64,000 nucleotides of DNA. Origin: Chara braunii (taxonomy: Eukaryota > Plantae > Charophyceae). Positions 34,060 to 63,498 of this stretch are shown here, in pieces. Position 1 is the stretch's first letter. Each line of letters begins with the position of its first letter. The stretch spans positions 4,858,005 to 4,922,004 of the forward strand of contig BFEA01000022.1 in the NCBI GenBank assembly GCA_003427395.1, written 5' to 3'. Under the pieces are notes generated by a model, which did no database searches, was not told where the DNA came from, and saw only the letters and a program-made list of their open reading frames with translations. The translations under genes were made by a program, and so were the position numbers.

Positions 34060-34140
<81 letters not shown>

Positions 34141-34148
<8 letters not shown>

Positions 34149-35743: not shown

Positions 35744-36312
35744 AAGATTCGTTCGACAGTAGTGGGAGTTGAGGCGAAACGATTTTCCACCACTTGAGAA
35801 CAGAGCGTGGTTTACAGCTGACCTCAAGGAGGAGATATTTGCATTACGACGGGGAGTGGAGAAGATGAAGAAGGCCATCGAGCACCTGACAACAAAGTTA
35901 GCAGATTGTAAGAAGTACTCACAAGTAGATAAGGGGGACAAGAATGAGAACACGGATGAGAAGAAATCAGGATCAACGGAGGAGAAGACAACGAAACCAC
36001 TGACAGCAGCGGATCTCAAGATAATGAAAGATTCGTTCGATAGCAGTGGGAGCAGAGGCAAAACGATTTTCCACCACCTGGGAACAGAGCGTGGTTTACA
36101 GTTGACCTCAAGGAGGAGATATTTGCACTACGACGGGAAGTGGAGAAGATGAAGAAGGCCATCGAGCACTTGACAACAAAGTTAGCAGATAGCAACAAGT
36201 ACTCACAAGCAGATAAAGGGGGACAAGAACGAGAACACGGATGAGAAGAAATCAGGATCAGCGGAGGGGAAGACAACGAAACCACAGACAGCAGCGGATC
36301 TCAAGATAATGA
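35744..36312 (+). repeat. Tandem duplication (2 x ~284 bp) in the coiled-coil-like upstream coding region of the PLE
   Basis: AAGATTCGTTCGA...GGATCTCAAGATAATGA occurs twice and encodes DLKEEIFALRR.VEKMKKAIEHLTTKLAD. Confidence 0.9.
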
Positions 36313-37184
36313 TCGATAGGGCTTTGGAGACAGCACTACCAAGAAGATAAGGTGGAGAAACAAGTAAGGCTGGAAATGCACAGATAGGAACCGGTGGAGC
36401 AGACAAAGCTAGCGCAGCAGAAGGAAAGGTCGAGAAGATGGTGTCGAAAGTACGAAGAGATGTCAATGAAACCAAGCTGATGAAATACGATCTTCCCGCT
36501 GTCAAAGGTGCCTTAAAGAAGATAAATGAACCATATAGAACCTACACACCGCATGTATCATCCACAGTTAATCCAACCACTTTCAAGGTTCTATGATGAC
36601 TGGTGCACCAGCAACAGTGCATGTCGGCAGGAGTGCACCAAGTCGACCACTGGTACCACATCCGAAGCGCGGGAGGACGAAGATCAGATAACCGAGCAGA
36701 GCAGCAAAGGTGAAGAGGAACATCAGCTTTGGATTCGAACCATTGACAGATACGCAACTTTTGAGGCTTCACTACACTGATCTACAAAAGTTGTGCAAAA
36801 CTCACACATCAAGTACAAAGACAGACCGCATGCCATGGCTGCCCTATTCAAAGTGTCGGGACTCGTAACATACGAAGGGAGGGACTTCATTCATGATTCC
36901 GACTTCGAAACACGGATCTACCCGGAGGACATCAAACAAGATGCCTCAAGCTATGAAGACAGCGAAGAAGAAGACTCAGACTCCAGCGGCAAGGGTGACG
37001 ACTTATCACCTACATCATCCAGTGGCCATGACATCTCGGGAAGGTAGAACGGCCAGAGCCAACGTGGGGTCTCACGAATGAGCAGAAATGGATGCATACA
37101 CATCGTATAGCATCAAGTGTAGAATTACTTGTAAATACAGGGCAAATGAAAACTGCTTCGATAGTAATAGACTATATAGATTGC

Positions 37185-37557
37185 TTTTTATATCATTAGG
37201 AATTGAGGGCAGTATTACATGGGCAAGATCATTTGTGGATTTATGGACGGCTCATTATGCATGAGTAGACATTGCTAAACACGAATCATTGTGTATATGT
37301 ACTCCCTTCACCATGGTGTAGTCACTTTTACATACGGAAGACGGGGCGGCGGCCGGATAGTAGGTGGTGTGGCTCGAAAGATTGGGAAGGGTGTACAACG
37401 CAAGTTATTCAGCTGGCTACGGAAATTTGGTTGGCATAAGTACGTACTCATACCAATATGGACGGGGGTGAAGTTTGAAGAAGTCTCGATGGAAGAGGCT
37501 CTCATTAGCAGACTAAATCCATACTTGAACACACGTGGAAAGAAAAGGAAGCAATGA
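37185..37557 (+). pseudogene. GIY-YIG endonuclease domain, degenerate
   Basis: FYII...YYMGK upstream, then KLFSWLRKFGWHKYVLIP...MEEALISRLNPYLN (E..LI..L.P.LN motif). Confidence 0.75.
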
Positions 37558-38769
37558 AAGAATAGAAAGCAAAGAAGAGGAAAAAAATCCGGGAGAAGTA
37601 CAATTAATCAAAATATGCCTATAATCATATAATGTTTAAATCTACGAGATCCACACATGCAATGAAGCTGATCCAGATTCTGCAATCGAAAGCAACAATA
37701 CAAAATACTGAAGGCAAATTATGGTACGAGAAATGGAAGGTGATCAAACGAACATTCGGGTCTACCATAATTGAAGTAGAGGGAGTACAATATATGCTCA
37801 AGGAATGCAAAAGTTTACTGGAAGCTGGTTGTAGATTTTGTGTTATCAAGTTAGTATACACACGACCATCGTCAAATAAACATAGGAACACATTGATTAA
37901 TTGTCTAAGAGCCCCATGGAGAAGGAATAAATTATATAAGTTGTCATTGGATGATTTACTTTTCCTACTGTCAAAAGTCGGTTCGATCACAGGCAAGAAA
38001 CAACGTGGAACTATAAAGGGTGTATTTGCTAGGATATCGAAAAGAAAGTTTGCATTCAATATCAAACGAAGATTGATATTCAAAATTTCGTATCACGCAA
38101 ATTAACATAAAGCAAATTTGGAACACAACATCGGATGCTATAATTGGAAGCATAGAGAATCCCAACCTAGCGAGAGATTTGATATCATGCATGCGAGTAA
38201 TGTTTAAAAAAACAAAAACATTGCTGAAATCTTGCATGATCAAAAACAGGTAATGGAGACACTGTCTGCATGTGAATGCGCAACGAATTGGTTTCCAAAG
38301 ATAAAATCACATCTTTCGTGTCGATTAAGTCACATTGAACAAAATGAACTTATGTGGAATGCAAAGAATGTACCGTATATAAATGCAAGAACATAGAAAA
38401 CAGATGGTGCATAGAGCCATAGTACAGACCATATCCAACATACCATCAAAAATGAGAGTTTCGCAAGGAATGTATGTGGATTTATTCGACTGTGTGATCT
38501 CAAACATCAATGATAAATACCGCCTGGATATCTCCGTAGTGTGGTAGGTGAAGAACAAATTGAAGGGATATATATTATCACCGTTGGATAGAAATCCCGA
38601 TGAAACATATATTGAATGCCCAAAGACCAGGTTTGAAAAAACCAGATCTGTCTTCGTAGAGTCTGCACACTACGGGCAACAGACAGAATGTGAGATTCTC
38701 CAACAAGCAAAGCATACATATCATGCATGCTGACTTAGGAAAGTGGCTAAGTGTGATGATAATGGATCA

Positions 38770-39895
38770 TATGGAAATACGTACGTAATACCAAAGAACA
38801 AAGATGTATCCAGAAGACGCCTAATTGTACCAACATACAATGAACCTTCACGCCAAGCATAAAAAATCATGTTAAGAGCCTTAAATTTCCTATGTAGTAC
38901 GTGGCAATTAGGGTTTGCCCTGCAAGGTACAAATCAACTGGTTCCAAGACTAAAACAGTTCAACAAAACGACAACACAGACATGTGGACAAGATGCCACT
39001 TTACTATGCCTGACATATGACGTAAAGGACACGTTCTCCAACTTAGATCATACACATGTCCTGAACGCCATACAATGTATGCTAAGTATAGCGAAAGACA
39101 AAAGGAATACCCATCTATGCTATAAAATAAGAGGAAAATATATAAATTTCGAAAACGCAAATGAAAAACAGTGAAAATTAAGATATTATGTGACCTACTA
39201 TATTTTAATATTCAGCATGCATACTTCAAAGCACAAGGTATATTGTTACGACAAATCAAAGAAGTGCCCATGGGAAAAGGATCTAGTCCGCCGATCGCAA
39301 ACATGGTTTGCGCATATGACGAATACAAATGACATTTTGAAATCGATATAGACCAAAAACTCGTACATGGTATGAGATTTGTCGATGATGTAATGATCGT
39401 AGCCATTGCGAATCAAAACAACATTGAAATTGAAACAGCATGCCTGAATTCATTCATAAAGTGTTATCACTCATCGCTAAAATTAGAATCCACATCAAAT
39501 ACGCAAAGTACAGAATGAAATTATTTTGAATCACGAAGATGGATCACGAACTCCTCCTTAAATGTACGCATAAACTCTAGAATGAAGCTACACTCCGGAA
39601 GGGGTTGTTAAGCCTCTCTCTATTCGATCTATCTGTCATTTGAGGAGTGTCGGCTCCGTGAACACGAAATTATTGACGATCATCGACACTTTCCACAAAA
39701 TGGTAACAAACACGTATGACATGAACGACTTGTTCGCCGTATTGAAATTATATTGCACAAAGCTTAAATTGTTGGAATAACTATGGAAGACAACACGCTC
39801 GACAATTTTGGCCTTCATCAAGAATTGTACAGACAACACTGTGCGGAATATCTTCTTATAATTTATGGAAAAGGAAGACATAACAAATTGGTAAA
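38770..39895 (+). pseudogene. Penelope-type reverse transcriptase, frameshifted
   Basis: YVIPKNKD..RRRLIV; YDVKDTFSNLDH (motif A); QIKEVPMGKGSSPPIAN (motif B); RFVDDV (motif C). Confidence 0.88.
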
Positions 39896-40822
39896 ATAAA
39901 CTAAAAAGCAACATACAAAAACAATGTCGGAATGTCCGTGGAAAGGTAAAACAGTAAGTTCCCCTTTCTACCAAACAAAATACAACGGAAATACAGCCGA
40001 GTACCCGTATATGAAACACAAATACGACTACTTGGACCTCTCGTCAGAATATCGAAGGAACTATATGAAAACATATCGAAATATAGAACCTTGTTGAATT
40101 TCGCATGGAAAGACCGACTAGGAATTTCTAAAGTTTCGAATATAAGATCATACAAAAATAAATACCAAACAGTCAAAAAGAAATTCAAAACGAAGCTCTC
40201 CAAAAAACGTACCGACCAAGAAGAGTGCAATCGAACTTCGAACTCACGATCTGAACCGATACAACACTTAGATATTAGCGAAAGCATTGCAAGCAAGGAC
40301 AAAAAGCAAAAGTCCAAATTCTAAAATCCAAATTAAAAAATAATAAAATTCACAAACGAGGACAGATGATGAAAATGAAGGATACCTGAAAGCGTTACCA
40401 GGTTACTTCATTGGATATGAAGACGCAAAGCTTTTTCGAAAATGAATTTTACGGCATATCGCGACCAAAAGAGTATTGGGATAACCGGTATCAGCAGCAA
40501 CGACGAAGAGACTTCAAGAAAAGTAAAGACAAAGTTTTTCGGAGAAAGAATGATTTCGACATATCGCGATTAGAAGAACATATGGACGGTGGTAATTCAA
40601 CAACCCGACAATGACACGATTTTGAGAGGAGACTACAAGGACTAGGGTTCAACCGGACGGGGAAGTATTTGGACCAAAGGGTATATACATTGATGATAAT
40701 CGCAAAAAAAGGATTACCTGAGTAGAGAGGTAGAAGGGTAATCGCGACTGTTTTGGCCGCATGCCATGGACAGGACACGTATTCTGTGAAAGTAAAGCCT
40801 CGCACGTGCTGTCCAATCTTGC

Positions 40823-40824
<2 letters not shown>
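39614..40824 (+). repeat. 3' pseudo-LTR
   Basis: Direct repeat of 34141-35349, ending TTGCAA immediately before (CT)n. Confidence 0.92.
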
Positions 40825-40891
<67 letters not shown>

Positions 40892-40892
40892 N

Positions 40893-40986
<94 letters not shown>

Positions 40987-42969
40987 TATTTACCCAAGTT
41001 ACCAGCTCCATACCAATACTCCATGTGTAAGACCACGGGACGCTGAATGCATGCGGACAAGGCGTTCACACGGTTCCCACAGGTCAGGGCAATGATAGTG
41101 TCATTGATGCAGACACACGTAAAAATACTTTGCTGGTTGAGATCCGTTTTAATGGCAAGACAGCAAGAGTTCATGGAACCCTACTTTCAAATTGTTTAAG
41201 CACTGAAGATCCACGTCACATCGATGCCTAGATGTACTATGTTTCAATGTTCCCGTTTGTTAACACAAAACTCTTTCATACGACACTCAAGCAGCGAAGG
41301 ATTGCATCCACAAGCTACAAGTATTACGTTCAAGATTTCCTTCTGACAGTACCCTGCTGCTAAGTGGAGAGAAAACACAAAAGCACACTTCCAGATTCCT
41401 CTATCTGTTCGAAACGAAAACATAGAAATATAAATTCAGGAAGATGGATTCAACAGCTCCACGATCATCACTATGGTGAGCGCATTGCTTCCCTAGTTAC
41501 CGCCGTCCTCCCTCCATCCTACTCATACTCCACCCTAGTACGAGTACAACCCCTTCCCTTTCTTCCTTCACCTCCAATGTGTCCATCGAAAGAGAAATGT
41601 GAAAAATACGGTAAAGAAATCCCACTTGATGACTTTTATGGCTATATTCCTCCCTCACTACCTAGCTCCCCATCCCTTAACATCCAACCATACACTCCCC
41701 ACCCCTTCCTCAACTCCGATGTATGTCGCACAATCATCCAGAGACCTGTACGCCGCTCATCTCATGACAGAAGTACGCATCCCATTCGTCCCACTATCCC
41801 TGCCAAGACCTCCTCTCACCCCCATCCTCTCGATGTTCTGCACAATCAACCCAGCGTTCCATGTCCATCTTAATCCCATCCTCCTTCTCATCATATCCCC
41901 AACTCTCTTCCGCGACGATTCTTCAACCAAAAACTCGTGCTGCTCAAGGTTGCAATCACATCCTCCTTCGATCCACCTGTCGAGTGACCGTGGAATCACT
42001 TCAGATGTACCCCTTTTCCGAAACGTTGAAAGTGCTTCTACGTCACCATTCATCAACCATCAACACAAAATACAAAAAACACGATACAAAATATACAATA
42101 CACAGGTAAATTATTGGTGAGGATCTAATCGTAGAGGAAAACGTTACCCTAAACAACAAGTACAATAGTGTGTGTGTAATCGCGACACCACCTCCATCAA
42201 GCTTCATTCCATAGAACCACACAATGGGTCAGGCAATGAAGAAGGAGAGCGAGATGCAGCGACTAGGGATTAGTGGCAAGTCCTTAAAGCTAGCTTTTCG
42301 CTGGCTGCCACTGAGACAGCTCATAAAAGGGAGAGGCTCAACAGCACACCCATCCATAATCGCACCTGTGGTTAGTGTTACACACACCCCGTGCTTACAC
42401 AAGGTAGCAACAAACCTATCATTCTCTTGATCCTTACGCATGATCGTACCACACTTACCGTGCACTGCTGTCCATGCTGCAACAGGCCTTCCCCATCCAA
42501 CATTTCATCCATTGACGGGACACACTCCCCCATGGCCGACATCTTCGAACCAGCCACGCTCACGCTGCCGAACCTCGCTGGCAACTGAAAGAAGCAGTTT
42601 ACGGTGGTTGTTACTTTCGTTTCGCGCCGCCGCACCCCGCTCCTTTAGAGCGAAGAGGACGAAATCTTAGGACGAATCCGGATAAACAGTCTAGTTACTA
42701 CGCTCTTCACCTGTTCACAGTCCCAGGCCGGTCATATTCCAGCTCATACCATTTTCCCCTTTTTTTCCTTTTTTTTGGGAAAACATTTTTCACAGCGGTC
42801 CCGATCTCCACCCTCTCAAATAACTCAGGCCTTGATTTTTCCAAGGAGGGTCTGACTCCTTCCACCAGTGACCACCACTGTAATTTTCAGGTAGAAATCA
42901 TTACCAGGCCTTCATCAAGGGGTTCTACTGTGAGTGGGGAAGCAGAAAACGTAGGTATGTGTGTGTGTC

Positions 42970-45040
42970 TTTTTTTTTTTCTTTTTTTTTTTTTAAACAC
43001 CCCACCGCCATTGCTAGTGGTGTTGGTAAGAGCAGACACCGCTATCACCTGGGGGGAGGCCCCATCTATTGGTGGGGGGCATCACCTACTGGAAAACGGG
43101 TCCAACGTCCCATGTACAAACTGAATGTCGGAATACATCCGAAAAAGGTTGCGGGGGGGGCCTGCCAGCATTGATTACCCTGGAATCCAGGGGATTGACT
43201 AAGCAGGGCCTTAGAGAGAAGGGGGAACCTCTTCACCTTGGAGTCAGCGCCAGATACCTGCAATTGCACATGAGTTCCTCCCACCCCTAACTAGTTCCCC
43301 ATACTCACTGACCCAGAATGTTCAAGCTGCGTGCATTGGCAGGCTGCCAGCATTGACTGGCCCAATCCGTAGAAGGGGGGGGGTAATTGAGAAGCAAGAT
43401 GGAAAAACAAAAACGGAAAAATTGGGTATTTAGCAAAAGAAAGAGTAACCTCCCCGGGGGGCTCCGAAAGGCCATTTCTTATCTGAGTACGAGTGAGCAG
43501 AAGATGGGGTAACAAAATTCCTCAGTCAGGACAAGATCTCTACCAGGGAAAGGGCATGGGGTGGGACGGGATCGGGGAAGTCCCAGGGGGGGGGGAGTGG
43601 GAATGAGGGTTCAATGTTTGTCCAGTCCTTAAAACATAGGCGATAGTCTCTCATCTCTTCCAAATCCCACTGTCCCTTTCCCTTGTCTCCGCTTCATTCT
43701 ACTTTCGCAATCCATCCTTCTCTCTCCCCACCCACCCAGTCTGTGCAAAATGTTGTGATCTGTCTCCTGACATCTCCTACTTGTTTACGGAGGTCTAACT
43801 GTGCTTTTGTGTCTAGCCATCTCTGTGTGAGTTCGAAGTGTACCTGCTGTTGAATCTGTTCAGTGATTTCCGCCTCTTGTACTCTCACCTTCTCCATGGC
43901 CAAAGTGCATCTTTGCCACCAAAGTGCCCATATTACCGCTCTCCTTCCAAGTTTGTACATGTTTTTAATGAAGGTCGTAGTTGCCTCTGCCTGCGGCAGC
44001 CAGAATGGCCTGCCAAGACCAGGGCCAGGGGGTTACAGATTCCATTTTTCTCCAGATGCGATCCCACCATCTCCATATGCATTGGGCGATCGGGCATTGC
44101 ATGAAGATATGTTCAATGGTTTCCGCCTTCCTGTAGAATGGAAAAAGGCTCTGGCACCGATGGCACCATGGAAGCAGCAGGCCTTTTTGTTCTAAGTTAG
44201 TGTCATCCATTAGCCAGTCGTTACTTGGTAGACAGCGGTGGGCAATCTTCCATTGCAGGGATGTGATTTTCATAGGTTTTGCTTTTGTTCTTGGAACCAT
44301 TTGATTGGCAACAAAAGGGAGTGATCCACATTTAGGTGTCTGGCCCATCGGTCGTTTACTATGTCTCTCAACCTTCTTTTAGGTCTGAGCATTTTGTAGG
44401 CTGATCTGGCCGACAACTGATGGATGCTGATACGTCTGGCTATGAGACCTCCCCTCCTCTGGGGGGGATCCCATGTCCAATCTGCCGGATCCAGAGCCAG
44501 ATCCTGGATTGGTTTGAGAGGCTGAAAAACCACCTTTTGTCCTTTCTCTTCTAGGATTCTCACCCGATACACAAGTTTTATCCTTCCATTCGAAGGGGGC
44601 TGTGCTGCCTTGGAGGGTGTCTGCTCTAGTGATTGTGTAGTGTTCAATCAGGACAGACTGGGGTGAGACCATGTGTATCAGACCTATCCTATGTGGAGAC
44701 TTTGTGCTTGCTACCCAATCGCCTTCTTTTAAGATGGGGCCTCGGTTAAGGGTTTGGTACCGGGCCAACGGGATAGCTTCAATCAGGTTGTCCAAGTGCT
44801 CCTCCACGTGGTGGCAGTATCGTAAGATCACTCGCATCTGGTCTCCTGTTTTCCAGTCCCTTCTGTCTTTGTCCAAAAGATCCCCAACTCTAAGCACCCC
44901 TCTTTTTTTAAAGCACCCCAAATTCTCTCTCTCGTTTCCTCCACAAATCATAACAAACCATATAGTAGAAAATGCAAGGTTGGCCCCGTTTGTGTGGTTC
45001 AGTGCGGAGTGCCCACACAGCCGTCTCCCACCGAAGTGGA
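42970..45040 (-). mobile_element. 5'-truncated L1/Tx1-type LINE (ORF2 C-terminus, 3' UTR, poly(A))
   Basis: KRGVLRVGDLLD...WKT and WKIAHRCL...CHRC...ETIEHIFMQC (zf-RVT-like), homologous to the tail of ORF 52780..55566. Poly(T) at 42970-42994. Confidence 0.85.
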
Positions 45041-50111: not shown

Positions 50112-53100
50112 ATTCAGGTCACCCAAAGAATATTAGACAAACTGTGGTCAGTACAACCTCCGGAACCAGGAACACAAGAAATTTCAGCCCTTGTTCCCCA
50201 GGCAAGAGAGGATACCTTCTCAGTGGATGGCCAGACATGGCCACAAGTCCTCATTCAGGAGATGGCGGAGGTGCTGCAGTCAGACCAGAACCAAAATATG
50301 CTGGCTGCAAAAAAACAGTTGTGGGAGGACAGCGTCCCACCCCACTTCCTCATAATTGTACTACACATAACACCATCTCAGGAAGTCGACAGCACTCTGT
50401 CCACAGATTCGGCAATCAACCTCATCTCAGACTCCGACTCAGACTCCTCCTCCATCTCCTCTTTGCAGGCCTGTTACACTGATGACGAAGAAGGGGGAGG
50501 CACACAATCAGAATCTGACTTGGGAGCCGAGACTATACCTCAAACAATGGACCGGACTGGGCAGCCACGATTCGAAAACAACCAAATGCAACGGGACTAC
50601 CAAACCCGTGGCCCCCCGAAGGGGCCCCGGCAGCCCCTCAGAAAGCCCACCACCTGAGGGAAACTTAGAGACCTCATAAGGCCCTCCTCCTCCACCCGGG
50701 CACCAAAAGACAGTGAACCCCTACAGGGCCTACTAATCCTTTCGATCAGGAGGGATCCTCAATCCCGGGCATGGCAGCTTGGCCTGCACACAAAGGGATA
50801 CCTAGCAGACTTTACTGTGGACCATGCTAGCTCCAAGAATGAATTTGTGGGGCTCACGGTTGAAGGATGGCAGGGGGAATACGGGAAAACAGAGGCTGTG
50901 AGAATGACCACAACCCTCCTTGCAGAGTACAAAGATACAGAGGCTCAGGGGGTGGGCCTGCCTCCGAACCACCCACTGCCACGAGGCATCACGGTGGCCA
51001 CAACTGTCCTTGACTACGACCTCTCCTAGAAAGGGGCCTCCTCTCTGCTATGGTTCGCTGAAGAACAGTTGGTTGACCTGTCAACAACCAGGCTGAGATC
51101 CAACCAAGCATGGAGATTAGCCCAGATCCATATTTTATTCCAAGCTATTTTAGAAAATGGGTTTCTCCATGCCACAAACAACTAGGATGACCCTATGCTC
51201 CTTAACAAATTGTGAGCCACCACATACTATAAACCACTAACACTTGTCAAGATGGAGCAACAAACAATGTGTGCAGGAGACCGCCGCCCCGACCCACCTA
51301 CACAATCCACGCCGCAAACGCATGTCCTTCGCATTGCACCGCTACCCCCCCCACACCAACCAATCACCCCCCCCCCCCCCCCCCCCCCCCCCACTCCACT
51401 TGTTGTGCCGCCACCCCTCAGACCCATCCCTGCCTGGGCAAAAAAATTGGCTCAGGCAGACCTGCACATAAGGTCCCTCAATGTCAATGGGCTGACACCC
51501 AGAAAACTGCAGCCATTTGGAATGAAATCAGACACCCGGATACAACAAATTGGCCAGACGCCATCTGCATCCAAGAGACCCACCTTTCCGACACAGCTTC
51601 CCACCAGGCCAAACACCGGGCGGTCTGGCCACACACAGCATTCACAGCCCCGACCGTAGGTACGGCCTCAGCAGGGGTGGCCATATGGCTGCCACCCTCA
51701 TCCCGCTTGTCCCCGATCCAATCAGACTACGACAGGCGGGAAGGAAGATGGTTATACCTCAAAGCAACCCTTGGGGACGAAGAGATATGTTTGGTAAGCA
51801 TATACGGCCCGAATGATCCCATACAACGCATCCAATTTTTCCAGACTCTACACGATGTCCTGCCCACCGACTGCCCAACCATCTTGGCAGGGGACTTTAA
51901 TACCACGCCGGACCCGGGAATGGATAGACATTCCATCCCTCTCCCTGACATAGGAGAGCTCACACCAGACATTATATCTCTGTCCCAACTCATCTCAGAG
52001 AGACAACTGTGTGATATCTATAGACTCCTCCACCCGACTAAAAGGGCCTACACATGCCTGCGCTCGCGAGGGGAGGCGGGACTCTCCAACTCTCGCATTG
52101 ACTTCTTCCTCATTCCCCAAGCGTTGGTGAACCTGGTCACAATAGCTGAGATTCAAGTCATCAGCCCCTCGTGATCCTTTGACCATAGGGGGATAGCCTT
52201 GGGCATCTCCTTCCACCAACATCTGGCCCGGGGACCAAGCGTTTACAAATTTAATACATCACTCCCTAGACTTCCGGAATTCGATGACCTGGTCAAAGAG
52301 TATTGGCGATACTGGGACACACAGAAAACTCCACAACAATCATGGGTGGACTGGTTCAACATAGGAATTGCCAACCTAAGAGAAAGGACAAAAAAATTCT
52401 CGATTACTCACACGCAAAAGCGAAAGGCCACCATTGACAGACTGATCCACGCTTTGGAACAGTGGGATGACCAAATGGTCAATCGGCCTCTTGACCAAGA
52501 CACCTATGCTCACCTCCAAGACGCAAGGGATCACCTTCAAGCCTACCTAGACTACCAATCAGAAGGATGGCGAATCCAAGCGAAAATAAAGAAGACAAAC
52601 CATGAAGGTACAATGGCAGCCACCTTTTTTGCTAAAGCCAAAAGCAGAGCAAGGCAACACCTCGTGGCATCCCTACACCACCCTTTCGACCCTCACCAAA
52701 AAGATGTCACCGAACCGTACTCCATCGTTGACTACGCAGCGAAATATTACCAGAACTTGTTCACTTCTGAGACTGCGCAGTGGGAACCTCGTGTTTTAAA
52801 CGACGCCCGGGACACCCTCCTCAACAACCTGCCATCCTTGCTCTCCCACACCCAAAGCCAAGCACTAGAAGCGCCCTTAACCACACAAGAGATACACAGA
52901 GCCTTGCTAGACATGGACGACGAAAAGACCCCTGGGCTGGACGCTTTCCCAAAAGAGTTTTGGGTGCACTACTGGGATCTCTTCATAAACGACTTCATGA
53001 ACTACACACATGTGGTTCAACAAGAAGGCAGATTCGGGGACCTGTTGGGGTAGGGAGTGACAACACTGTTGTACGAAAAGGGGACAATGCAGAGATACGC

Positions 53101-56100
53101 AATTATCGCTCAATCACACTCTTGCCGCTCCCCTACAAAATGGTAGCAAAAGTACTATGCAACCGCATGTTGCCATACATGGGCCACCTCATCCACATGA
53201 ACCAGACAGGCTTCATGCCTCAGAGGAACATTCAGGATAACATCCTCTTGGTTAATGAAATCATAAAATACGCATGCCAGAGGAAGAGGGATGCGGCCAT
53301 CTTATTTATTGACTTTGAGAAGGCCTACGATCATGTCGATTGGACCTTCCTAGACCTGTGCATGGCCAAAATGAACTTTGGCCTGGGGTTTAGGCAATGG
53401 ATCACCACCCTGCACCACTCAGCAACGACCAATATAATGTTGAACGGCCATTTATCATCTCCACTTGCATTACAAAGATCGGTACAGCAGGGTGACCCGA
53501 TCGCACCTCTTCTCTTAGTCATCGTAATGGAAGCCCTGGCTGCACTCATCAGAGCTAATCCGGCCATCGAACGAATATCCATCCCAGAACTGCCCGCTTA
53601 CCTGGTACCGGTCACATCCCTGTTTGTGGATGACCTTACAATCCTTCTCCACGCTTCCCCAGCTAGCATGAGGGCGCTCGCCCATACTATCCACCTCTTT
53701 TCTGTAGCGGCGAACATGAAAGTAAATTGGGGAACTAAAACGGAAGGATGGTGGTTGGGAGAGGATGGTGAACTCCCCCCTGCTGACCCCCCCGTGTCCT
53801 GGAAACCCAAAAAGGAAGCTATTCGGATCTTGGGGGTCAGACTCACAGCCATGGGACTGCCAAAGGACCACAGTGACCGACTTGTTCAAACAGCCATCCA
53901 AGCAATGGCAAGGTGGAAAGGCCTCCACACTTCTTTGGTTGGGAGGACCCTGACCATAAACAATGCCATACTGTCTACAATCTGGTACAAGACAGTCTTT
54001 TGGGCACTAGGTCAGAAACAAATGACTCGCCTCAAGGAAGCCACAGCGGCTTACCTCTGGAGAAATGATCACGAGATCAAAACATGTATCAAAAGGGTGG
54101 CGTGGGCCCAGGTGGCCCAACCAAGATCAAAGGGCGGCTTGGCTATCATTGGCCCGGAAGATGAAATCAAGGCCCTCATATTTAGAATTATTGTCAGAAT
54201 ATTGATGGCAAAGGATGTCCCTTGGGCTCCGCTGGCTCACATCCAAATAACCAGCCTTGCCCCTGACACAGCCCAAGACCGGCCAGTACACTCTCTCTTA
54301 TGGCTCACGAATCATGGATGGTCTATCCTTAACGCACCTACGACACGCCACAACAACTCCCCAGCAACAGCGACAAGAACGGACCTCCTCAATGACCCCC
54401 TCTGGACTGATATCATTCACCTATGGAGGGACATAGGTTCGGACAAGCTGCCCCCTCCGCTGCGGTGGCAGGAGATATGGAGACAGTCGTGGTTCGACAA
54501 TCCCCACATAGTCAATTCACAGGGACAACCTTTTTCCATAAAAAACGATTCACATTGGCTGTCATGGGCACGAAGGGGGATTATTACACTTGGGGACCTA
54601 TGGGACATACCGACTGGCCAATGGAAGACCAAAGACCAAATGAAGCCCAGGCTTCACCACATAAAAAACGTGGAAACAAAACTACGAGAACTTATGACAA
54701 CCATACCAACCACCTGGGCCGATGTCTTGAAAAAGCGTCCATCCACTCAACCAGGGGACTGGGTGGTTGAGATGACCACCCTGCCTCTCCCCATGGTCGT
54801 CTACCAGGTGAAGGCCTGCACAGAGTCTGGAACATCCCTGAAAGCATATGAGTCGGCCCTCCCGGGAGCCCGCGTATCCCGCCTCACCAGAAATGCCCAC
54901 CTGGACAAGGAGCACAACGGACCTGGCCTCACAAGAGTTCGGACATTGGGAGACAACGAAGAGGGATGGTGGGCATATGAAGCCTCCACCCCCATATCTT
55001 CTCTCCTGTTCGACCCGAATGAATGGCAATGGGGAGGACGGACACCGCTCCCGCTATGGAAGTTCACGGTAAAAAACTGCTACAGAAAGGTGCACAACAC
55101 AGTTGACACCACAGACATTGTCAAAAACCGATGGCGGAGGGACTCCGCCGTATCAACAGCGTCCCTTCACAACTTTCGTTGGTCACATTATACGGGCATA
55201 ATGCCTACCTCTCAAAGGGCGCTCCAATGGCAGATTGTATACCGCTGTCTCCAGACCCCGGACTGGCTGGTGTCAAGATCCACACTTGAACAAAGGGGAA
55301 TTGCATCCCCCCTCTGTACCTTATGTGGAACATCAACCCAAAAGTCACGGGCAGACCTAGAACACTGCCTCTTGGACTGCCCCATGGTCAATCAAATCTG
55401 GCGCTGGTGGGACGCAGTGTGGAGGCACCTCACAGGCATTGATCTCCCATGGAACCCAGGGACGTTGTTAATGGACCTGCCCATAACTAACCAGCACACA
55501 TGGTCCTCCTTCCAATCCACTCTCTTTAATTACACGCGTGAACGGGAATGGCTGGACTTCGCGTAAGCTGGCGACTCTTGATGACAACCAAAACCTCCAT
55601 TGGAAACAATGGTGGCGAGATGAAGCCGGCTGGTTGAGACGGATCCTCCCACCCACCCGTAGATCCTCCCTTACAGAGCTGGCCATACCCCACCCTCCCA
55701 CACCCACCCATGATCTACCACAGCATCCCCCACTCCCNNNNNNNNNNNNNNNNNNNNNNNNNNNNNNNNNNNNNNNNNNNNNNNNNNNNNNNNNNNNNNN
55801 NNNNNNNNNNNNNNNNNNNNNNNNNNNNNNNNNNNNNNNNNNNNNNNNNNNNNNNNNNNNNNNNNNNNNNNNNNNNNNNNNNNNNNNNNNNNNNNNNNNN
55901 NNNNNNNNNNNNNNNNNNNNNNNNNNNNNNNNNNNNNNNNNNNNNNNNNNNNNNNNNNNNNNNNNNNNNNNNNNNNNNNNNNNNNNCCTTGGCCAGGCGC
56001 TCGACCAAGCTCGAAAAAACGAACTCGAACACAAAAGCTAGAGCCAATGTGGAAGAACAGGTACCTCACAAGATACTCATTCCGGCCAGGCAGGGGCCTG

Positions 56101-56806
56101 GCTGGAGGTTAGGCCCAATCAGTACAACAGCCACAACTTTGCATCTCGACAGATGACAGAACTCATGACTAAAGAAAAGCACCCGGATTGCTGGGTCAAA
56201 CAAGGAACAAGGGACCGGGGCAAAAAACGACAGTAAAGCAGTGACTTCCAATTTTGACCCTTTACGAATGTCTTATACACTAGTTTTAAGAGGGTTTAGG
56301 GTTTAAATGGGAGTAAAGGGACAGACACAACAAAAATCAAACAGGGGGGCTACTGAAATAGGGTTGGGCGAATAGATAAGGGGTGCTCCAAAAAGGGTAG
56401 GGTGTCACAAGCAGCTCCATGGGACAACGGAGCCCCGGAATGAGACAATAATGACCGCAGCCGCAAGAAACAACAAGGACTGTAGAGACTTACAGATAAA
56501 CAACTGCAGACTACAGTTGCATAAAAGACAGCGAAAGGGAAACAAGGCAGAGGGGGATAGATATGAGAACCATCACAGACTTGGAATGACATGTACAGGA
56601 GCACATCATTTCCCACTGTCATCAGCAGATAGGATCAAACAAACAATTTCAATGTTCAGGGACGATGGACCCGCTTTCCAGCAGGTGTTGCTCCCCACCA
56701 ATAGATGGAGCCTCCCCGACGGTGATAGTGGTGTCCGCTCTTACCAGCACCCCTAGCATTAGCTCGGGCTGTTTTCCTGTAAAAAAAAAAAAAGAAAAAA
56801 AAAAAA
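50112..56806 (+). mobile_element. L1/Tx1-type LINE
   Basis: APE endonuclease, RT and C-terminal zinc finger, with a 3' tail ending in poly(A) at 56781-56806. Continuity across the gap at 55738-55986 is assumed, and the 5' boundary is uncertain. Confidence 0.85.
51460..55566 (+). pseudogene. LINE ORF2 (APE endonuclease, RT, zf-RVT), disrupted by frameshifts and stops
   Basis: IRSLNVNGL, CIQETH, SIYGPN, AGDFN, SRIDFF and DH (endonuclease); YRSITLL, DFEKAYDHV, QGDPIAP and FVDD (RT); CTLC...EHCLLDC. Confidence 0.93.
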
Positions 56807-57641: not shown

Positions 57642-57950
57642 GACAAACAGACGTCTATCAGACTGCTTCACACTGAAGGTGTCCAGATGTGGCAACTGTC
57701 ATTTTCAGACTTGGAGAGCGGCAGGTTCCAGAGAGTAGTGTGGCTAAAAGCATTCTCGAGCGGGATTTCATGTTCGGGAGCACCCCCAAATATTTTCTAG
57801 AGCTCGGGAGTGGTGTGGAGACGCCCATAATGATAATAAGGCCAGAAAGGACATCCTATCAGGTTAGACAGAAGATTGAATTGTCTACCACGGGGGCAGG
57901 GAATGCAGCCTTAAGGGTCTATTTTCTGTTTTTGTCCTTTTTTTCCTTTG

Positions 57951-57997
<47 letters not shown>

Positions 57998-58075
57998 GTT
58001 CTTTTTTTTTTTTTTGTTGTTGTCTTTGTCTTTGTTTTCTTTGTCGTTGTTGTTGTTGTTGTTGTTGTTGTTGTC

Positions 58076-58306
58076 ATATTCGCTATACACACGGTTCTGT
58101 CGGACTTTCACCGACTCAGCAGGAGGTTGAACCCTGACAGTCTGCCCAGGATGCATTTGACTGATGGATCAGGACTCACCACATCGCCCAGAGTTAGTGA
58201 TACCCCAGAGAAAAGTGGTCGACTTTACTCACACCAACCTTGCAATCCTAGCAGACTGCCGGTCCAAACCCTTGACAAGAACGGTAGTAAGTCTGAGAAA
58301 CTAATC
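58076..58306 (-). ncRNA. Non-coding repeat copy 1 with a degenerate type III hammerhead (58087-58147) and an (AAC)n/A-rich tail
   Basis: GCAGACUGUC^AGGG-uucaa-CCUC CUGCUGA GUCGG-ugaaagu-CCGAC AGAA CCGUGUGU; homologous to 61372-61553. Confidence 0.6.
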
Positions 58307-58339
<33 letters not shown>

Positions 58340-58344
58340 CACAC

Positions 58345-58376
<32 letters not shown>

Positions 58377-58410
58377 CAGACAGACAGACAGACAGGAAGA
58401 AAGAAAGAAA

Positions 58411-58781
58411 GGGGGTACCATGAAGTATGAGGCAGAAGGTGGTCGTGTACCTACTAGACTGTTATATCGCGTCAAACGCGGGGACGCAGCCATTCGGGTA
58501 GCATGCTTTATGTTCTAGACAGAAAGCTTGGCAAAGGTCTTATGAAGTGGGGGATGGGCAGCCTTCTGGATGGTAGTGTCCAAAGCCAACGCTCTCCCAC
58601 ACACCACACGCAACCCACTCACACCCGTGTTGGCTGAAGACCTTACTGATACGGACTGGAAGGATCCAACTCACTATCTCAGTTGGATGGCACCAAGAGT
58701 GCCAAAGGAGGCCGTGGGGATTGAACCCACAACCTCCTGAATGCCACTTGCGTGCCTAACCAATGGAGCTAGGGCGCTGGA
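58411..58781 (-). mobile_element. tRNA-headed SINE-like element with the same head as 57115-57575 but a different body
   Basis: 58708-58781 closely matches 57501-57575 (A and B boxes). The downstream body is unrelated and the 3' end is uncertain. Confidence 0.7.
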
Positions 58782-59822
58782 TGGAGCCCAGATTCTTCTA
58801 TCGCAGGACGGGGGAAAAAAAAAAAAAAAACACTGAAAAACGAATAGCAAGCTACTGAGGGTTGTACCACCCCACAGGCCACCAGGAAAAAGGGCATTTC
58901 AAGCTCTAAACTACGAGCAGTGTATCTACCTTTGCTCTACTGGAAGATTCATGCTCATGTTGCACATTTGGTCAGTAGTGGAGCAACGCCCTCTCAACAG
59001 CTCTCGGGGCCAAAGGTAAGTGTGTTTTTTCTTCTTTTTTTTCTGAAAGTAGATACGTTTTGTTTTTCTTTTCTTTTCTTAGTAAGCCCTGCCAACGAGG
59101 CAGGGCAGTCCGTTCTATTTCCTTACTTGGGCATAGTAAACAACAGAATGCTTCCATACTGTATTGCGGTAGAAGAGAAAAAAAACAAAAGGGGAATAGA
59201 CCCAGACCCAAATCGCCCATATCGCCCGCCCCCAGTTTGCAACGGGAAAAAACTCTATCCCTCAAAAGGGAAACAATGGACGACGCCCTATACTAAATTG
59301 CAACGACCTTGACAAGCTAACGTGCCCTACGACTGGCCTTAGGGGACGACTGCGACCGGACCCTATTTTCTGTTGTCGGAGACCCCAAACGAATCCGTCC
59401 TAGCGAAGTTGTACTGCACGACCGAACCGAAAATAGAAAGAAATGAAACGACAAAAATGAAACCCACACAAGCGCAGCCTCCTGGCTGCGAAGTAGAGTA
59501 CCTCCAGATAATTCGTAGCCCTAAGGCTGCGGTATAATAGGCTTCGGAGTCTGTGTCAAGGTGGCACATTTTCAGCAGCGGGGAACCGGCACACAAGAGG
59601 GTTCTAATGGGGTGAAAGTTGTTGGGGGACCGGTCCACCGCATTTTTACGGACTACCTACAGCCATCGCACGTAGAACCGTCGCGGTAGCAAAATTGAAG
59701 GACCGGTCCTCCCGGCCATCTGAACTGCAAAAGGACCCTCAGGCCTAGGCGTTGAGGCCCGTCTTCGGAATATAGGGAGGTCGACTCTAGGAAGATGTCT
59801 GAAAGTGCAACAAAACAGGCGT

Positions 59823-60320
59823 TTTGCCAGAGGCAACTTTGGTGATTTTTTGTGCTCGGAGGAATTCATAGAAAATGCGAACATTCGAGACTCCAGAGAT
59901 TACGTCTTTGTCTTTCCAAGAAAAATATTGATTTTTTTTCAGAAAATCATTAAGACCGCGAAATAATCACAGCACCGATTTGACCCATATTCCATTTTTG
60001 CCACTCAGTCATGTGTGGGCCAACGGAAAAAGTGTCCAATGATTTTTCCCGCTCAGAAGAATGTGTGAAAAAAGCTGAAAATTGCAGTGCTCGTAGATTT
60101 TATTATTTTTTTTTTTTGAAAGGGCGACAGCCTTGAGATATCATCATTAAGCTGACCGGCCCCAAGTAATTCAGAAATAGTTGGTTTCACAACTTTTACT
60201 CGTCAAGTTCCATCATCTGGATTCGAACACGGGTCTGTATTTTCAACAGCTCATGGGTGTACCCACTGGGCTAGGCTCTTGGGTAGTGCTCGTAGATTTT
60301 GTTGTGATATTTCCAGGAAA
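59823..60320 (+). repeat. Dispersed AT-rich repeat, diverged direct copy of 63693-64000
   Basis: GCAACTTTGG..ATTTTTTGTGCT..GAGGAATTCA and CCACTCAG.CAT.TGTGGGCCAACG are collinear in both copies. Confidence 0.8.
60102..60284 (-). mobile_element. Short tRNA-derived SINE (~180 bp) with poly(A) and 16-bp TSD
   Basis: A box TAGCCCAGTGG and B box GTTCGAATCC. TSD AGTGCTCGTAGATTTT at 60086-60101 and 60285-60300. The paralogous empty site is at ~63962-63977. Confidence 0.88.
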
Positions 60321-60391
60321 AGAATAATAAAACTAAATAATGCCAAATGCCAACTGCGAATAGATCATGGCTGCAATTTGACCCATATTCC

Positions 60392-60476
<85 letters not shown>

Positions 60477-61316
60477 NNNNNNNNNNNNNNNNNNNNNNNN
60501 NNNNNNNNNNNNNNNNNNNNNNNNNNNNNNNNNNNNNNNNNNNNNNNNNNNNNNNNNNNNNNNNNNNNNNNNNNNNNNNNNNNNNNNNNNNNNNNNNNNN
60601 NNNNNNNNNNNNNNNNNNNNNNNNNNNNNNNNNNNNNNNNNNNNNNNNNNNNNNNNNNNNNNNNNNNNNNNNNNNNNNNNNNNNNNNNNNNNNNNNNNNN
60701 NNNNNNNNNNNNNNNNNNNNNNNNNNNNNNNNNNNNNNNNNNNNNNNNNNNNNNNNNNNNNNNNNNNNNNNNNNNNNNNNNNNNNNNNNNNNNNNNNNNN
60801 NNNNNNNNNNNNNNNNNNNNNNNNNNNNNNNNNNNNNNNNNNNNNNNNNNNNNNNNNNNNNNNNNNNNNNNNNNNNNNNNNNNNNNNNNNNNNNNNNNNN
60901 NNNNNNNNNNNNNNNNNNNNNNNNNNNNNNNNNNNNNNNNNNNNNNNNNNNNNNNNNNNNNNNNNNNNNNNNNNNNNNNNNNNNNNNNNNNNNNNNNNNN
61001 NNNNNNNNNNNNNNNNNNNNNNNNNNNNNNNNNNNNNNNNNNNNNNNNNNNNNNNNNNNNNNNNNNNNNNNNNNNNNNNNNNNNNNNNNNNNNNNNNNNN
61101 NNNNNNNNNNNNNNNNNNNNNNNNNNNNNNNNNNNNNNNNNNNNNNNNNNNNNNNNNNNNNNNNNNNNNNNNNNNNNNNNNNNNNNNNNNNNNNNNNNNN
61201 NNNNNNNNNNNNNNNNNNNNNNNNNNNNNNNNNNNNNNNNNNNNNNNNNNNNNNNNNNNNNNNNNNNNNNNNNNNNNNNNNNNNNNNNNNNNNNNNNNNN
61301 NNNNNNNNNNNNNNNN

Positions 61317-61369
<53 letters not shown>

Positions 61370-61371
61370 GA

Positions 61372-61553
61372 GGACCGACAATTTGCAAGGATATAGGGTT
61401 GGTATGAGTAAAATTGACCACTTTTCTCAGGGTTATTGCTAACTCTGGGTGGTGTGGTAAGTCCTAATTGGTTAGTCAAATGCATTATGGGCAGACTGTC
61501 GGGGTTCAACCTCCTGATGTGTCGGTGAAAGTACCTGCGAATAGAATGCACGG
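61372..61553 (+). ncRNA. Non-coding repeat copy 2 with a degenerate type III hammerhead (61489-61551)
   Basis: GCAGACUGUC^GGGG-uucaa-CCUC CUGAUGU GUCGG-ugaaagua-CCUGC GAA UAGAAUGC. Confidence 0.6.
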
Positions 61554-62118
61554 TCATTACACCTGTGGTTGGGCTAACTTTCAGGTTAGATATGCTGGTA
61601 ATGATCGTGGGTTCTATTTTGTTCTATTCGGGATCAAAAATCGTCATCATAATCATCATCTTTGGCTTCTGTAGTGCAGCTCACTTTGGGAGTCGCAATT
61701 GTGATGACGTGGCCACTGTGGAGGTCACTTGGCATTTACCGAGCGATGTTGATGATGTGTCATTGGGGAGAACGAAGAAGATGAGGAGGTGGATGAAGAA
61801 TAGAAAGAGGATGACAACAGGAGAGGTGGGGGAGACCTTAGACTTGGAGAGATTAATAGTGGTGTGAAACAACAACGAGAAGCGTTAAGAGAGGAGATGG
61901 GAGTGTAACTCTAGGAGGGAGATGGAGTAGAGACTCTATACAAAACAGCAAATGACAATAGAGTCAGTCACGACAAACCTACTCCATCTCGCATCAACTT
62001 GGTCAGGGGGTACCCCACAGATTGTTCAATGTCGGTCGTAGTAAAAGACTTCTTTTTTATTTGGATATTAAACTTACAACGAACATTATTCCAAGTTAAG
62101 TCAAGCCAAAACCGTTAA

Positions 62119-63498
62119 ACCACCACTCTATGGGACAAGACGAAATTGCGCCTACCGGTAGGCCGAATTTGCGAAACGGCGTCCGGACTATCGGTAGGCG
62201 AGCGTACTACTAGGTTACCCTTTTCGTCAGTCCTGTCGGCGGGCCCAGCAATTGCAAGTGTATGTTTTTTTTTTTTTTTTTTTTTTTTTGAATGGGAAAA
62301 AAAAAAAAAAAATTACAAATGTCTTTTCGGATGGATCCCTGCCAGGGGCCGCGGTTGTTGCGGCGCCGTGTGCACAGAATTGCAGTTACGGCCGGATCCC
62401 CTTCGTAGGGCCTGTTGGGATGAGTGTGCGAATCTGGACGCTGGGCCCGGTAGAGATTCAGGAAAGCATATTTGTACACTCTTTTCTGCACCTCGCTGCA
62501 AATCTGGACGCTGGGCCCGGTATAGATTCAGGAAAGCATATTTGTACACTTTTTTCTGCACCTCGCCTACAAAACGTCCACGTTCAGTGGATGCAACCGC
62601 GAGATGGCACAGTCTTCGAAGTCACACATCCACGACGGTGGAAACATAGTTTTATGTGTATGTGTGTGTGTGTGCGAGAGAGAGAGAGAGAGAGAAAGTC
62701 TGTCAGCGCAGGAGCCAACTGTTGTTCATCGCTTAGTTCTGGTGGATAGTGGCCACTCCGCAGAACGAGCGCGGATATGGACGCATCGGCGCGGCAACGA
62801 CAGCGATGACGCAGCACAGACAAGGACGCATCGGCGCGGCAATGACACCGACGACGCAGCACGGGCACACAGAAACTACGAAGGGGCTTGCACACAGAAG
62901 CGACGAAACGACGAAGGCCCTTGCTGCAACTCTCGACATGCACAAAAGACAAAAATCTTGGCCGTGTATCTTTCCGAAATGCAGTGGAAGATTCACCATC
63001 ATTTGGCACATTTCCAGAGTACTGCAGCCCTTGCCGGTGTATCTTCCCGATACCAGGGGAAGATTCACTCTCGTTTTGCACATTTCGAGAGGCCCCAAGC
63101 CNGTACGGCCACGCTGGCGAAGACGTTTGTTTCTGCCCTCAACCGTTTTTTTTTTTTTCGGCCTCACCTTCTATGCATGTGGACGCGGAAACGTGTGGCG
63201 GGACTGCAAAAAAATAAAACAAGGCCCATGAAAATATGAAAATATAAAAGAAAAAAAAAAATTGGAATGTGTTTTGTTTTTATTTTTTTGTAGACTTTGA
63301 AAATGTTCTGGAAAGTGGCGGCCTCCACTGTTCCCGCCTTCGACAGCAGGGAAAATCACCTGCGCCCCGAAGGTGTCACTGGTTCCCACTTTCCCAGGCA
63401 GTTGGGCCTGCTGTTTCACCCACCGATCGCCGCCCTCCCTAAATAATCACCCGGACTCACAGGAGGGGCTATTTCCTCCTGTCCCATAGAGTGGTGGT
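62119..63498. mobile_element. Non-autonomous TIR DNA transposon flanked by TTAA
   Basis: TIR ACCACCACTCTATGGGACA.GA.GAAAT.GC (~31 bp, 3 mismatches). TTAA at 62115-62118 and 63499-63502. Internal 70-bp tandem duplication at 62431-62566; no ORF. Confidence 0.88.

Follow-up and report, generated by a model that had tools for sequence, protein, structure and literature searches.

We describe two short repeats in the window (the whole 64-kb stretch of DNA analysed) that are quite probably dead insertions of a very abundant, non-coding Chara braunii retroelement, the master of which would end in a complete type III hammerhead ribozyme. Most likely, the family belongs with the Chlamys-type Penelope-like elements of this species that bear hammerheads, as either their 3' module or a non-autonomous relative. 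It is a notable variation on known ribozyme-bearing retroelements and no new system.

Two diverged copies of one unit adjoin (CA)n microsatellites

The unit occurs twice in the window (Table 1), with no inverted or tandem partner beside either copy. That the two are diverged copies of one unit, as the earlier note had claimed, is borne out by a gapless inverted repeat of 136 nt (58104-58239 and 61397-61532) with 85% identity. BLASTN pairs 58104-58265 with 61372-61532 at 82.7% over 162 nt, and the copies were also aligned with MAFFT. The limits given in that note had to be redrawn: copy 1, placed there at 58076-58265, has family similarity and multi-copy depth from 58099 to at least 58300, and copy 2 ends at about 61557 instead of 61553, running into a post-ribozyme tail (CACGGTCAT at 61549-61557).

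Table 1. Coordinates in the window of the two copies, their hammerhead relics and their flanks.
Feature	Position	Strand	Remarks
Copy 1, (CA)n-associated hammerhead element	58099-58306	-	Body and 3'-damaged ribozyme; 93.9% identity to family majority
Hammerhead relic, copy 1	58089-58144	-	Hammerhead_3, 22.3 bits at 58089-58143
Compound microsatellite, 5' junction of copy 1	58307-58339	-	(TC)8(CA)9 in ribozyme sense
Atypical 3' flank of copy 1	57920-58098	-	18-nt motif at 58073-58090, then (AAC)n and an A-rich tract
Copy 2	61372-61557	+	Older, shorter, 5'-truncated; 83.6% identity to family majority
Hammerhead relic, copy 2	61491-61548	+	No Rfam match
(AC)25, 5' junction of copy 2	61317-61367	+	The run itself is 61318-61367
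(TC)41 (60395-60476), then 840-N assembly gap (60477-61316)	60395-61316	.	Lies 5' of (AC)25

The microsatellite flanks noticed earlier were found at both loci, the putative (TC)41...(AC)25 pairing at copy 2 spanning the assembly gap, which overlaps neither copy. On the + strand the flank of copy 1 reads (TG)9 (58307-58324) followed by (GA)8 (58324-58339). Other (TC)n/(CA)n junctions have similar gaps, as in another Chara locus (L003, 3184-3552), which suggests that the gap beside copy 2 is an unresolved compound microsatellite.

The two copies begin at different positions of the element, each adjoining (CA)n. In total, (CA/TG)n makes up only 216 of the ~61,400 read bases of the window, so that the abutment of both 5' ends in the same orientation is far above chance (~1e-7 by our own estimate). 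Several read-derived 5' junctions also adjoin (CA)n, seen as (TG)n loose ends on the + strand behind 58130, 58134 and 58224; together with the window copies, these junctions reveal an insertion bias toward (CA)n. The abutment was observed at the 5' side; at the other end, the majority tail is known for 30 nt.

Both hammerheads in the window are relics

In copy 1, the stem III 5' strand (58137-58144) is followed by C17 (58136) and stem I (58123-58135), after which the core reads CUGCUGA (58116-58122), with an A6>C change at 58119 (G on the + strand). Stem II and its loop occupy 58099-58115, AGAAC (58094-58098) stands where GAAAC is expected, and the stem III 3' strand is missing. In copy 2, the GUC ends at 61500 and stem I (61501-61513) leads into CUGAUGU (61514-61520), that is, A9>U; the stem II 5' strand (61521-61525) faces a broken 3' strand (61533-61538), followed by GAAU (61539-61542). 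The core lesions and the lack of a clean GAAA were thus as first described. The broken helix is III in copy 1 and II in copy 2, and the invariant CUGANGA...GAAA core, present in the family majority (GUC, CUGAUGA, GAAA), is absent from both loci.

Rfam support for the single loci is weak. Against Hammerhead_3 (RF00008), the copy 1 score had an E-value of 0.031 in a 551-nt search and lay below the gathering threshold of 48.5 bits; a whole-window Rfam scan at E<=10 did not list this hammerhead, and copy 2 had no hammerhead match at all. Taken as a single locus, neither copy is a convincing hammerhead, and the significance of the pair rests on the family level. Judging from their lesions, neither copy 1 (~6% diverged, with A6>C and a replaced stem III 3' strand) nor copy 2 (~16% diverged, with A9>U and a broken stem II) can be expected to self-cleave. 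Both loci would be fossils only, with no function of their own.

The family majority sequence carries a canonical type III hammerhead

The best matches of an ORF in the window all come from Chara braunii, with 84-93% identity. Publicly available Chara sequences, both DNA and RNA, were aligned onto copy 1 at >=80% identity, which recruited 4368 contigs from DNA, while the RNA reads or contigs numbered in the hundreds to thousands. The majority sequence was derived from the pile-ups of these reads and contigs, not from aligned full copies, and is based on the variants listed there. CUGAUGA is regained through G>T at 58119, carried by 167,683 of 169,772 depth units, and the 1.1-2.1 pair through T>C at 58135 (103,510 of 115,137). 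The consensus of the loose ends before 58099 (X1, X6, X21 and X22) restores GAAA and an 8-bp stem III. Since variants of the type found in a (TA)n-associated sibling family account for less than 10% at the restored sites and body-containing copies make up at least a quarter of the ribozyme depth, the consensus of the (CA)n family itself must be canonical.

The 3' part of the majority sequence reads CAGACUGUC^GGGG-UUCAA-CCUC-CUGAUGA-GUCGG-UGAAAGU-CCGAC-GAAA-CAGUCUG, followed by a short tail. All 17 pairs of its helices (8 + 4 + 5) are standard, with helices I and II closed and III open, and every invariant core base, the GUC site and the G10.1-C11.1 pair are present. The predicted ribozyme fold (-19.5 kcal/mol) lies within 1.3 kcal/mol of the minimum free energy of -20.8. 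These features support, for the presumed family master, a type III hammerhead of canonical form whose loop 2 is of the UGAAA type. The chimeric sequence that the earlier note had assembled from the two copies agrees almost exactly with the majority, in which every lesion is mended, and its view that both copies have decayed from a non-coding element, present in many copies and associated with microsatellites, fits the family-level data.

Across five hammerhead sequences, 80.6% of the cells are paired in the hammerhead register, compared with at most 54% in slid registers. The stem covariation anticipated earlier did not appear: none of the changes among the five is two-sided or compensatory. 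JGI metagenome contigs gave 0 exact matches to a 33-mer and to a 23-mer of the majority ribozyme.

The unit is predicted to fold into a rod that competes with the ribozyme

The unit, at least 230 nt long, is an imperfect palindrome, the reverse complement of its left arm matching the right arm at 72 of 107 positions. Its predicted fold is a long rod (MFE -98.2 and z -5.5 for the majority sequence; z -2.85 for copy 1). In the predicted rod, the strand with the cleavage site is paired to a segment far upstream, so that the ribozyme and rod folds would compete. On the antisense strand, the unit has a degenerate half-motif of a hammerhead only. A U-run after the ribozyme was considered as a Pol III terminator and dropped; the tail of the (TA)n sibling runs pyrimidine-rich for ~70 nt past the ribozyme, and the U-run is probably internal to the element.

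A sibling family and the search for a reverse transcriptase partner

The sibling family was found in L003, where its hammerhead (24495-24549) scores 42.1 bits (E 5e-8; gathering threshold 48.5). The sibling has seven copies there, with a common 3' end and variable 5' ends; one of them begins 4 nt past the cut site, and there is also an inverted truncated partner. This diverged sibling retains the core and the helices, its changes being one-sided, as in G-C to G-U.

The window holds a decayed Penelope-like element, which has no hammerhead and is flanked by microsatellites in an order different from that at the copies. Its reverse transcriptase (RT) piece was searched with HMMER against 1.84 billion representatives and gave 8 matches, 4 of them from Chara (L003-L006). 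The ENA matches L007-L009 are non-Chara metagenome contigs, two with bacterial-type genes, and were set aside as spurious; the eighth match is a bacterial protein. At the four Chara loci, which contain RT genes and were examined with 10-kb flanks, there was neither a copy of the unit nor a hammerhead beside the RT. The unit is also absent from the paralogous Chara gypsy loci L001 and L002 (49 kb), and the + strand translation of copy 1 (67 aa), used as bait for predicted proteins overlapping family copies, gave no candidates.

Mode of propagation and alternative origins

We propose that target-primed reverse transcription, starting at a constant 3' end, would turn the RNA of the element into DNA, a mode of copying that would yield 5'-truncated copies at (CA)n. 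The different 5' ends of the copies at (CA)n and the greater depth at the ribozyme end of the element fit such truncation. The enzyme would most likely be the RT of Chlamys-type Penelope-like elements. In read-through transcripts, or in partly tandem ones, the hammerhead may cut after GUC; such cleavage would set the RNA ends and could give rise to very short copies that begin at the cut. We lean slightly toward the unit being a separate non-autonomous parasite.

Alternatively, the unit may be what heavy 5' truncation has left of an autonomous Penelope-like element, namely its 3' end (pseudo-LTR or tail), the element being either Chlamys-2_cBra or the endonuclease-less PLE-X. In C. braunii, both types have been described with a canonical hammerhead (Craig et al. 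2021, PMC8557442). The 3' position of this hammerhead, the very high copy number of Chlamys in this species and frequent 5' truncation (PMC8557442) agree with such an origin. So does the aligned depth, which falls smoothly toward the 5' side without a plateau, from ~200,000 at the ribozyme to ~3,400 at 58300, and so do the differing 5' ends of the two copies. Against it, copies linked to an RT were found neither in the window nor at the four Chara RT loci, the L003 sibling is a discrete ~197-nt unit with (TA)n runs on both sides, and the self-contained palindromic rod suggests a discrete module. We regard this origin as possible rather than probable.

A bolder reading would make the (CA)n family an independent, ribozyme-processed 'algal retrozyme': a viroid-like rod of ~250 nt, cut by its type III hammerhead, copied back by a Penelope-like RT and perhaps circularised. 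We think this improbable.

Also improbable is a true retrozyme or viroid-like replicon, in which hammerheads of tandem copies would release unit RNAs that are circularised as intermediates of transposition or replication. The type III hammerhead with its UGAAA-type loop 2 and the highly self-paired rod would suit it, as would a few joints that go back within contigs of an RNA-like run. One of these joints, however, is due to a repeated CAGACUG motif, and the others are single contigs. The window copies are single, inverted and ~3.1 kb apart, they lack LTRs and show neither tandem nor dimeric hammerheads, and one ribozyme per unit is unable to release a monomer. PBS, PPT and 4-bp target-site duplications were not noticed when the flanks were read by eye. 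The retrozyme membership suggested by the earlier note is not supported by the arrangement of the copies, nor by its proposed check for RNA-seq reads at the cut site.

In the RNA data, neither a pile-up of read starts or ends at 58135/58136 nor a dip in depth across the site was seen; the libraries, poly(A)-selected and dominated by dead copies, are uninformative here. Circle junctions were not seen either, in alignments to a copy 1 reference that lacks the family tail and cannot reveal unit-length junctions. The element is present on both strands, and 72-80% of its reads continue into unrelated sequence, so the signal looks like passive read-through transcription.

The (AAC)n and the long A-rich tract after copy 1, together with a LINE in the window that has both APE and RT (51269-55566), might point instead to a SINE that ends in (AAC)n/poly(A), owes its mobility to an APE-type LINE and resembles a hammerhead only incidentally. 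This is very unlikely. Depth drops ~35-fold at 58098/58099 (53,317 to 1,496) and the family majority has another tail, so the (AAC)n/poly(A) stretch, first taken as the end of the element, is not a family feature; it is private to copy 1 or a handful of copies, and copy 2 has no A-tail. The 18-nt motif in the copy 1 flank matches 8950-8967 of L003 at 17 of 18 positions, within another repeat preceded by (TC)n(CA)n, and the flank is probably another element or a chimeric junction. A tRNA-derived SINE had been considered for the B-box-like stem I, but ARAGORN found no tRNA, and the copies have no Rfam match to tRNA, 7SL or 5S.

Finally, the sub-threshold single-locus scores, the empty whole-window scan and the missing covariation would fit a chance resemblance in an ordinary repeat that never had ribozyme function, a notion we find scarcely credible given a majority sequence with all core bases, GUC, G10.1-C11.1 and three fully paired helices in order, a diverged sibling that conserves these features at 42.1 bits, and the hammerheads documented in Chara Penelope-like elements (PMC8557442).

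Comparison with known ribozyme-bearing elements

That the repeats represent an unusual class for an algal genome holds only in part, since hammerheads in C. braunii Penelope-like elements and the targeting of (CA)n by Chlamys elements were published in 2021 (PMC8557442). The family that we favour as a relative of these elements shares with them the host, the insertion beside (CA)n and the very high copy number, and, compared by published description, it resembles Chlamys-2_cBra and PLE-X in its 3' hammerhead and apparently frequent 5' truncation. It differs in being short (at least 230 nt) and palindromic, with no sequence-linked coding partner found. Non-autonomous derivatives of Chlamys exist in Chlamydomonas (PMC8557442); those of the MRC1 type are short and non-coding, as is the Chara unit, and share the 3' end of the autonomous element. 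In the literature searched, we found no description of non-autonomous Chlamys derivatives that bear a hammerhead.

Metazoan non-LTR retrozymes are 170-400 nt long, lack LTRs, PBS and PPT, and are thought to be derived from and mobilised by Penelope-like elements (Cervera and de la Pena 2020, PMC7229834); the animal non-LTR kind descends from the pseudo-LTRs of such elements (10.64898/2026.07.22.740005). The Chara unit is similarly small, non-coding and self-paired, with one hammerhead (PMC7229834; Li et al. 2026 preprint). The metazoan elements, however, have type I hammerheads, tandem arrays and abundant circular RNAs, whereas the Chara unit has a type III hammerhead and occurs as dispersed single copies.

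With plant LTR retrozymes (PMC4918200) the unit shares the type III hammerhead, a similar loop 2, a green-lineage host and the lack of coding capacity. Those elements have two direct LTRs, each with a hammerhead, as well as a PBS, a PPT and 4-bp target duplications (Cervera et al. 2016, PMC4918200), and they form circular RNAs of 600-1000 nt and are mobilised by Ty3/gypsy enzymes (PMC4918200). In contrast, the motifs in the window are inverted, lie on either side of an assembly gap and have no flanking direct repeats. The likeness to Avsunviroidae and viroid-like satellite RNAs lies in a type III hammerhead within a rod-like or self-paired RNA and in the competition between the ribozyme and the stable rod; these are free replicating circles with ribozymes in both polarities, unlike the Chara unit, which is genomic DNA in thousands of copies.

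The Chara element mixes the feature sets of plant and animal retrozymes, being short, dispersed and microsatellite-targeting, with a type III hammerhead and thousands of copies in a charophyte. To our knowledge, a tie to Penelope-like elements has been drawn for the animal kind of retrozyme only. If the ribozyme is active, the family would offer a tractable case for the role of hammerheads in Penelope-like retrotransposition and would bear on the origin of the type III genomic hammerheads of plants. Should the family prove to be an 'algal retrozyme', it would bridge the type III LTR retrozymes of plants, together with viroid-like RNAs, and the type I non-LTR retrozymes of animals, with the bridge lying in a streptophyte alga near the origin of land plants.

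Results

The window's two repeats, copy 1 and copy 2, were read and aligned at both sites and are the same unit in opposite orientation. The earlier note's claim of two diverged copies thus holds, with a gapless core (58104-58239 vs 61397-61532) 85% identical over 136 nt, which BLASTN stretches to 162 nt at 82.7%. No third copy was found within the 64-kb window. In ribozyme sense (the hammerhead strand), (CA)n lies directly 5' of both copies and (TC)n farther upstream. As (CA/TG)n runs of at least 6 units cover just 216 window bases, the double (CA)n association is not due to chance. The adjoining (TC)n that had also been claimed is contiguous with (CA)n at copy 1 (58307-58339), but at copy 2 it lies beyond an 840-N assembly gap separating the two runs and touching neither copy. 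Comparable gaps recur where (TC)n meets (CA)n next to other elements (e.g. 3184-3552 of L003, a Chara locus with a Penelope-like RT gene), so an unresolved compound microsatellite is the likely cause. Larger assembly gaps mostly adjoin (TC)n, (TG)n or (TA)n (window 28104, 31116, 33326, 60477; L003 3184, 7640, 9187), and several such runs sit beside retroelement 5' ends. Compound (TG)n(GA)n tracts are also found with no hammerhead element beside them, as at 62661-62695.

The hammerhead evidence is weak at single loci and strong at the family level. Copy 1 scores 22.3 bits against Rfam Hammerhead_3 (gathering 48.5) and is absent from the list of a whole-window Rfam scan at E<=10; copy 2 gives no match to the model. 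The core lesions described earlier are present in both: copy 1 carries A6>C and lacks GAAA and the stem III 3' strand, whereas copy 2 carries A9>U and GAAU and its stem II is broken.

Sequencing sets from one organism, containing parts of the stretch, were placed on 58066-58300 at 80% likeness: X1 (DNA contigs), X6 (RNA-like contigs), and X21 and X22 (raw oligo-dT RNA reads). A total of 4368 DNA contigs were recruited, with summed depths up to ~200,000 against ~8-15 per single contig. Taking their majority letters mends the ribozyme: CUGAUGA is regained through 58119 G>T (98.8%), and the first stem I pair through 58135 T>C (90%). In all four runs the reads depart from copy 1 at 58098/58099, beyond which the consensus in ribozyme sense is GAAA-CAGUCUGG-CACAGUCAUGC, then a U-run. 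The resulting 232-nt majority sequence includes CAGACUGUC^GGGG-UUCAA-CCUC-CUGAUGA-GUCGG-UGAAAGU-CCGAC-GAAA-CAGUCUG, nearly identical to the chimeric hammerhead that the earlier note had composed from the two copies. In the majority sequence each of the 17 helix pairs is standard, both G10.1-C11.1 and A15.1-U16.1 occur, and the ribozyme fold lies within 1.3 kcal/mol of the MFE. Among five sequences compared, the helices pair well, with no two-sided changes of the kind that would support covariation. Copy 1 is 93.9% and copy 2 83.6% identical to the majority sequence. Judged from these letters, and as had been proposed, both loci are relics of an abundant element, and its master carries a predicted canonical type III hammerhead.

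A sibling family, flanked by (TA)n, shares the ribozyme alone with the (CA)n family (~82%). Its type III hammerhead scores 42.1 bits (E 5e-8), with GUU at the cleavage site. Six more copies (five in L003, one in the paralogous gypsy locus L002) have a common 3' end and varying start points; one truncated copy starts 4 nt past the cut, and the family includes an inverted truncated partner. Sibling-typical variants stay below 10% at the restored ribozyme positions, and at least one quarter of the ribozyme depth comes from body-containing copies; hence the canonical letters belong to the (CA)n family's own master.

With its left arm, reverse-complemented, matching the right arm at 72/107 positions, the majority sequence is an imperfect palindrome and folds as a rod (MFE -98.2 kcal/mol, z -5.5; copy 1, z -2.85). 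A 12-nt upstream segment is exactly complementary to the cleavage-site strand, so the rod would compete with the predicted active ribozyme fold. In antisense, the left arm is merely a degenerate half-hammerhead.

The family does not share the (AAC)n/A-rich tract that follows copy 1, which removes the (AAC)n/poly(A) tail once taken for the element's end. At 58073-58090 an 18-nt motif agrees at 17/18 positions with an interior stretch of a different repeat, family Y (L003 8950-8967), which likewise has (TC)n(CA)n in front of it; probably, therefore, copy 1 is chimeric or abuts another element. The position of this family Y motif right behind the truncated ribozyme suggests a chimeric junction or a common 3' module. 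Depth over the flank (58066-58097) is 116-1,496, suggesting that ~10-25 contigs have it; these may be segmental duplicates or else a minor subfamily that multiplied with its ribozyme already broken.

Features of the window and of other Chara loci
Feature	Location	Strand	Remarks
Copy 1	window 58099-58306	-	
Copy 2	window 61372-61557	+	
Family Y, dispersed	L003 8780-9100; L003 3553-3800; window 43065-43126, 56652-56705	-; +; 	(TC)n(CA)n-preceded; 18-nt motif at 58073-58090
Sibling, full copy	L003 24416-24612		~197 nt between (TA)n runs
Sibling, stack of 5'-truncated copies and inverted partner	L003 12599-13537, 24307-24612; L002 3972-4057		
Decayed Penelope-like element	window 34136-40835	+	1.2-kb pseudo-LTRs, 90-93% identical; between (TC)n runs
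Ty3/gypsy pol ORF	window 15591-19424	+	1277 aa; two unread bases, otherwise open
LINE	window 51269-55566	+	APE endonuclease ORF; RT/zf-RVT ORF, 928 aa
Fragment like 3' part of bacterial-type LSU rRNA	window 10877-11110	-	234 nt; 168.7 bits; presumably organelle-derived insert
U6 snRNA gene or copy	L006 24810-24902	+	55.9 bits; ~8 kb downstream of the locus's Penelope-like gene model

The gypsy ORF encodes protease, RT, RNase H, integrase zinc-binding and SH3-like domains; its many matches, at 84-93% identity, are all Chara braunii proteins. A 454-nt inverted repeat (49658-50111/53939-54392, 96%) overlaps the LINE.

Discussion

Copies 1 and 2 start at different element positions. Depth peaks at the ribozyme end (~200,000 at 58122-58129) and declines steadily toward the 5' side, through 28,000-56,000 mid-body to 3,400 at 58300. 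Read-derived junctions place (CA)n beside further 5' ends, located behind 58130, 58134 and 58224; the second of these is one base off the predicted cut. Copies that keep one 3' end while their 5' ends vary at a microsatellite are the hallmark of target-primed reverse transcription. The best mechanism would be that a short non-coding RNA passes through a Penelope-like retrotransposition cycle of the Chlamys type, with the hammerhead processing read-through or partly tandem transcripts.

In C. braunii, two subclades of Chlamys-type Penelope-like elements are reported to carry canonical hammerheads; Chlamys elements insert at (CA)n and (C)n, are frequently 5' truncated, reach very high abundance in C. 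braunii, and have non-autonomous derivatives in Chlamydomonas (Craig et al. 2021, PMC8557442). The unit may be a parasite in its own right or may form the 3' module of one of the autonomous elements already published. No link to a coding partner emerged: at four Chara RT loci no hammerhead lies beside the RT. The window's decayed Penelope-like element retains RT motifs in broken frames (38863-39515), and Rfam at E<=5 found no hammerhead in 33500-41300, including the motif flagged earlier at 33776-33820.

Membership among the retrozymes, as first suggested, is not borne out: the window copies have neither LTRs nor tandem units, and data placed on copy 1 show no circle junctions and no RNA end pile-up at the predicted cut. 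Both strands are represented among the RNA reads, most of which continue into unrelated sequence, as expected from passive transcription of dispersed dead copies. Plant retrozymes are LTR elements with type III hammerheads; those of animals are tandem type I units, lately traced to pseudo-LTRs of Penelope-like elements.

In the literature searched, Craig et al. 2021 (preprint and journal paper) is the sole work naming both Chara braunii and hammerheads. What is new here is a subfamily associated with (CA)n whose long body is rod-shaped; the reads show its majority sequence to be intact.
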